From: Heteronotia binoei
Lineage: Eukaryota
Direction of reading: 5' to 3'
DNA length: 64,000 nt
Assembly: GCF_032191835.1 (NCBI RefSeq)
Contig: NC_083237.1
Location: 49,848,001-49,912,000, forward strand
The position numbers and the translations under genes were made by a program. Below the pieces are notes generated by a model that saw only the letters and a list, made by a program, of their open reading frames with translations, was not told the DNA's origin and searched no databases. Positions within the stretch are counted from its first letter, which is position 1. Each line of letters opens with the position of its first letter. Positions 49,595 through 49,855 of this stretch are shown here, piece after piece.

Positions 49595-49855
49595 GGACTG
49601 ACAGAAAGCGAGGCCGGCAGACCTACAACCAGGTACCAGACCCCTGGAAACTGGAGAAGGAATTCCACTACAACCGCTACTTGACCAGGAGGCGACGCAT
49701 CGAGATCGCCCACAGCCCTTGTGTCTGACAGAGAGAGACAGATCAAAATCTGGTTCCAGAACAGGCGCATGAAATGGAAAAAGGAAAACAAACCGGCGGG
49801 CCCAGGCTCCAACAGCCAGGAAAAACCAGACGCCGAAGAAGATGAAGAAGAGTGA
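49595..49855 (+). CDS. HOXB7: homeobox protein Hox-B7, exon 2; frameshifted as assembled (7 extra bases)
   Basis: Acceptor aaacag. Pieces [32 protein letters not shown] and [38 protein letters not shown]. Removing 7 nt gives 217 aa. Confidence 0.9.

Follow-up and report, generated by a model that had tools for sequence, protein, structure and literature searches.

Within the second exon of HOXB7 in the gecko Heteronotia binoei, the public assembly does not encode a continuous homeodomain. The question is whether a Hox gene has been inactivated in this lizard or whether the assembled sequence is faulty at this place. A true inactivation would mean that a lizard has lost a deeply conserved gene of body patterning, which would be striking; as a knockout by a single burst of small insertions, it would be the first amniote case of such a Hox gene loss and a clustered insertion mutation of a new type. 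If the lesion is an artefact, HOXB7 should not be scored as lost by users of GCF_032191835.1. A preliminary description based on the sequence alone had counted seven extra bases in the homeobox and had judged an artefact likelier than a true loss. Here, we examined the lesion by comparison with related squamates, by the selective constraint elsewhere in the gene, and by the distribution of short insertions in the surrounding DNA.

The HOXB7 locus of H. binoei

The HOXB cluster of H. binoei fills the window, by which we mean the whole 64,000-nt stretch of RefSeq assembly GCF_032191835.1 that was analyzed (Table 1). HOXB7 is flanked by HOXB8 and HOXB6, all on the same strand, as is the position of the orthologue, and the HOXB8-HOXB7 locus is collinear with that of Gekko kuhli. 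The first exon encodes a HOXB7-type N-terminus and the YPWM hexapeptide, which likewise identify the orthologue. Its product (44728-45126) matches the RefSeq Hox-B7 model of H. binoei at 100% identity, and the Hox-B7 protein matches have E = 5.8e-83. The intron is also collinear with the Gekko kuhli intron, including across the N run at 47288-47470, and ends with the acceptor ...ttttgaaacag/GG, from which exon 2 is read in frame from 49597.

The N run in the intron (183 nt) lies 2.1 kb upstream of exon 2 and may be a mask, not a gap. It is one of three in the window, together with 24609-24793 (185 nt) and 59497-59754 (258 nt), and these lengths are unusual for fixed scaffold gaps.

Table 1. 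Coordinates of the features discussed, numbered from the first base of the window
Feature	Position	Strand	Remarks
mir-196	8300-8376		
HOXB9 exon 2	~30.3k	+	
HOXB8	~40.1-41.7k	+	
HOXB7	44.7k and 49.6k	+	
HOXB7 exon 1, coding	44728..45127	+	ATG to donor G/gtgagt (45127/45128); 133 codons + 1 base; intact
HOXB7 intron	45128..49594	+	phase 1, 4.4 kb; contains the N run 47288-47470 and (TCCT)19 at 49324-49398
HOXB7 exon 2, coding, as assembled	49595..49855	+	261 nt vs 254 in relatives
Insertion cluster 1	49627..49650	+	three 1-base insertions that extend runs (AA, CCCC, AAA); net +3
Insertion cluster 2	49714..49738	+	four bases; net shift +1 frame
Premature TGA	49726..49728	+	from the shifted frame, upstream of helix 3
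Native HOXB7 stop codon	49853..49855	+	+1 frame relative to the assembled exon 2 start
Two miR-196 seed matches, HOXB7 3' UTR	50102..50165	+	CTACCTA at 50102 and 50159, conserved
42-bp tandem duplication, conserved HOXB7 3' UTR	50211..50301	+	2.2 copies, 97% matches; T13 run follows
HOXB6 exon 1	~62.0k	+	

Six insertion events split the homeodomain

We aligned exon 2 of the window with Gekko kuhli (L002) and two Podarcis genomes (L003, L004). The coding part contains exactly seven columns occupied by the window only, and zero gaps confined to the window. The comparison with relatives thus agrees with the seven extra bases described previously, which are absent from Gekko kuhli and both Podarcis, and the positions given for them match ours within the ambiguity of placing a base inside a run. 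The inserted bases were placed by an exhaustive search over deletions. For the first cluster, this search gave one solution only, namely an A of AA at 49627-28, a C of CCCC at 49641-44, and an A of AAA at 49648-50. These three insertions restore the frame among themselves, as had been stated, and replace TRYQTLE by NQVPDPWK, leaving helix 1 scrambled. In the second cluster, the extra bases are A49714 (alternatively G49715), a single base from either the C run 49716-18 or the T run 49719-20, and a GA unit located within 49730-38. The shifted frame runs into the TGA already reported, and the remainder of the homeodomain together with the C-terminal tail follows in the +1 frame. In a Pfam search, the first piece of exon 2 matched Homeodomain positions 13-35 and the second matched 41-57, and positions 1-12 had no match.

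The seven bases amount to six insertion events in 111 bp, with no deletion. Simple run extension accounts for five or six of the seven bases, in keeping with the earlier remark that the insertions mostly extend runs, and for all seven under a less parsimonious Ser reading. As assembled, the homeodomain is distributed over two frames and interrupted by the TGA, whereas it becomes an uninterrupted domain of 60 residues when the seven window-only bases are set aside. Counting then gives 133 + 1 + 83 = 217 aa, precisely the length that the preliminary description had derived. The 83 residues of exon 2 correspond to the squamate consensus, and the homeodomain is identical to those of Gekko, Podarcis, Tiliqua, and Anolis. 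In the 111-bp stretch itself, no more than three differences from Gekko remain, all of which are synonymous.

The rest of the gene is under constraint

Changes in exon 1 were polarised with Gekko and a closer gecko represented by contig L001, a Logan contig of SRR13336339 assembled from short reads, which comes from another gecko species at 85% identity and covers exon 1 of HOXB7, not exon 2. On the Heteronotia branch, exon 1 accumulated six synonymous and no non-synonymous changes (the dN/dS-type check proposed earlier), and it has no indel relative to the three other squamates, in line with the claim that this exon is intact. The flanks of exon 1, in comparison with L001, show 78-85% identity and 9-19 gap openings per 500 nt. 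HOXB7 exon 1 of L001 is identical to that of Heteronotia at 132/133 positions, and by its flanks L001 is nearer than Gekko kuhli (77%).

In exon 2, with the seven bases set aside, there is again no non-synonymous change on the Heteronotia branch. The splice signals, the native stop codon, and the C-terminal tail show no damage, nor do the two miR-196 sites, and the 3' UTR at 50000-50250 is 97% identical to that of Gekko. The conservation of both seed matches upholds what had been said of the miR sites. The promoter had also been described as intact; for the 250 bp upstream, to which our check was limited, 95.5% identity to Gekko supports this view.

Noncoding DNA in this region acquires ~0.2 indel events per substitution. 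The ~3 substitutions in the 111-bp stretch would thus be accompanied by 0.6 expected indels, and the Poisson probability of six or more is 4e-5. Even at the inflated ratio of Heteronotia itself, six indels would correspond to ~18 substitutions, and the Poisson probability of two or fewer given 18 is 3e-6. Zero non-synonymous changes, zero deletions, and at most three substitutions beside six insertion events are not the picture of neutral decay.

Short insertions are in excess across the region

The segment 39176-55985 (17 kb) was aligned with Gekko and both Podarcis, and only columns flanked by conserved ungapped sequence were counted. In this four-way test, Heteronotia and Gekko had similar numbers of substitutions (53 and 46), whereas their short indels were 17 insertions and 4 deletions in Heteronotia versus 0 and 1 in Gekko (p = 1e-5). 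The comparison with L001 over 2.2 kb gave the same picture, with 33 substitutions for Heteronotia and 34 for L001, versus five insertions and none, respectively. In conserved context, the Gekko and L001 branches together had no insertions and four deletions, whereas all six events in HOXB7 exon 2 are insertions. Thirteen of the Heteronotia insertions in the four-way test lie outside exon 2. Among the Heteronotia insertions, those at 39613 (A), 42086 (C), 51443 (A), 53336 (A), 53526 (G), and 54022 (A) lengthen runs, and further Heteronotia-only insertions were found in conserved noncoding blocks at 43511, 45578, and 50593. As would be expected from assembly error, Heteronotia-only insertions recur in the adjacent conserved sequence and not in the sister genomes; the other coding exons are spared. 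Two of the Heteronotia-only noncoding insertions and one of the options in exon 2 have the context CCC[T]TG in common.

Closer to exon 2, a segment of 1.1 kb (48870 to 50010) contains 24 insertions versus three deletions relative to Gekko (p = 3e-4), a surplus compatible with a local low-quality patch around the exon. Exon 2 is bracketed by (TCCT)19 (49324-98) and a purine-rich tract (49856-49940). The 42-bp tandem duplication in the 3' UTR is absent from Gekko kuhli and Podarcis, and it may be real or may be part of the same low-quality stretch. Judged from these alignments, the pattern across the region is that of a technical error which apparently favours insertions and has a hot spot at one place. 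This surplus of short insertions means that indel-based inferences from GCF_032191835.1, such as pseudogenes, changes in conserved noncoding DNA, and homopolymer lengths, need read support.

The errors are unevenly distributed. The excess insertions in conserved noncoding DNA amount to ~0.6%, which predicts ~6.5 insertions in the other 1088 coding positions, whereas only one was seen (P = 0.01). A model of assembly error as uniform noise was accordingly rejected: the other coding exons are without frameshifts. The homeoboxes of HOXB8 and HOXB9 in the same window are of normal length, and the single coding insertion outside HOXB7 exon 2 is an in-frame CCG at 40404. The absence of frameshifts from the other coding exons implies either that context or coverage influences where errors arise, or that some of the noncoding insertions are real. 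We considered cross-talk between paralogues during polishing as a local cause; in an alignment with the HOXB8 and HOXB9 boxes, the inserted bases show no relation to the differences between paralogues. The sequencing technology of GCF_032191835.1 was not found in the papers citing the assembly.

Two further peculiarities were observed in the window. The CCG insertion (40404-40406) lengthens a CCG repeat of HOXB8 exon 1 and occurs only in Heteronotia among the four genomes compared. In the mir-196 hairpin (66.3 bits), position 13 of the mature strand UAGGUAGUUUCACGUUGUUGGG is C, whereas the family consensus has U; cmscan marked non-standard pairs in the hairpin and no compensating change. This C could be a true variant or another assembly error.

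Artefact or inactivation

We conclude that the seven extra bases in the homeobox are very probably a sequencing or assembly artefact, and that H. binoei would have an intact and functional two-exon HOXB7 gene encoding 217 aa. This verdict, which strengthens the earlier preference for an artefact considerably, is drawn indirectly, from the selection signature in the gene, the small number of substitutions, the region-wide excess of insertions, and the RefSeq label of the gene model (see below). The seven bases would be consensus errors of the public assembly, namely spurious short insertions that mostly extend short runs and crowd into a stretch of low quality at exon 2. Their technical cause may be low coverage, failed polishing, or a patched stretch; the unpolished long-read gap filling suggested earlier is a further candidate, with the N run 2.1 kb distant and Heteronotia-only short insertions scattered over the full 17 kb. 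The annotation at NCBI met the same lesion and responded with a frame-corrected LOW QUALITY PROTEIN model. We infer that the DNA of the animal itself does not contain the lesions. A protein word search for an ORF joining intron-encoded residues to the scrambled homeobox found no independent H. binoei contig with an intact or a broken exon 2. The one sequencing run compared (with 5% of the words, and not from H. binoei) returned only chance or conserved pieces of 30-45 nt with several mismatches.

The most serious competitor to an artefact is a true and very recent inactivation of HOXB7, in this animal, in one haplotype, or in the species, by one complex event such as error-prone repair synthesis over ~110 bp. 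The lesions do stand in the public assembly, their clustering within 111 bp is what a single event would give, and the region's frameshift-free other coding exons argue that the assembly is not uniformly noisy. Loss of the gene might also be survivable: mice carrying Hoxb7 mutations are viable, and among the triploid parthenogens of H. binoei a single dead allele could be tolerated. However, known mutation clusters consist mostly of substitutions, whereas zero to three substitutions accompany the insertions here. Most of the inserted bases (five or six of seven) are simple run extensions, similar Heteronotia-only insertions are scattered through the nearby conserved noncoding DNA, and no loss of HOXB7 in an amniote was found among the 120 matches listed in the protein search. 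We therefore regard a recent inactivation as very unlikely, and hold it highly improbable that a single burst of small insertions knocked out HOXB7 in H. binoei or in one of its haplotypes.

If HOXB7 function had been lost long ago in the Heteronotia lineage with neutral decay since then, the frameshift, the premature stop, and the scrambled helix 1 would be its remains. Such an old pseudogene is hardly conceivable with an exon 1 that has changed only synonymously on the Heteronotia branch, with no deletions, with no non-synonymous change apart from the effect of the seven bases, and with the splice sites, native stop, C-terminal tail, and miR-196 sites all intact. The 97% identity of the 3' UTR to Gekko and both Poisson tests argue against it as well. 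Nor does it seem credible that the gene is expressed as assembled, whether recoding by programmed frameshifting or editing rescues it or it yields a truncated protein with a new function. Its one point in favour is that the first three insertions restore the frame among themselves. Yet NQVPDPWK would place two prolines in helix 1, where Pfam leaves the first twelve positions unmatched; two more shifts and a stop would have to be bypassed, and nothing similar occurs in any relative. Old pseudogenisation and recoding are effectively excluded.

The RefSeq model and known parallels

The frame problem in HOXB7 was previously flagged by the NCBI annotation pipeline. The top protein match is the 'LOW QUALITY PROTEIN: homeobox protein Hox-B7 [Heteronotia binoei]' (P0001, 219 aa), which shares the locus and the lesions described here. 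It carries the scrambled residues and AHSPCV-DRERQIK, and was thus derived from the sequence examined here, with a single base left out to get past the stop. It differs from the expectation from relatives in that it keeps the scrambled residues at a length of 219 aa, instead of 217 aa. The 'low quality' label of Gnomon denotes a model that is supported by protein alignment across a frameshift, an indel, or a premature stop, as is typical of indel errors, and assemblies needing such a correction in more than one gene in ten are excluded from RefSeq (10.1101/2021.07.16.452324). The LOW QUALITY model of Ursus americanus Hox-B7 (P0037) is another example in the same match list. Among the 72 HOXB7 matches with the helix-3 motif, two break the canonical homeodomain beyond single-residue substitutions, and both are LOW QUALITY PROTEIN models.

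Compared with canonical HOXB7 genes, such as those of Podarcis muralis (P0003), Tiliqua scincoides (P0013), and Gekko kuhli (P0061), the H. binoei gene has the same two exons, the YPWM motif ending exon 1, the phase-1 intron, the Antp-class homeodomain, and the acidic tail. It deviates from them as assembled only by the lack of an uninterrupted homeobox. The lesion resembles the indel errors of long-read assemblies, in which short indels break conserved genes, create spurious frameshifts and stops, and lead to low-quality labels by Gnomon (10.1101/2021.07.16.452324). However, six events within 111 bp, all of them insertions, are far denser than the typical residual rate of such errors. Because this density is far above the background, a special local cause must be assumed for HOXB7 exon 2.
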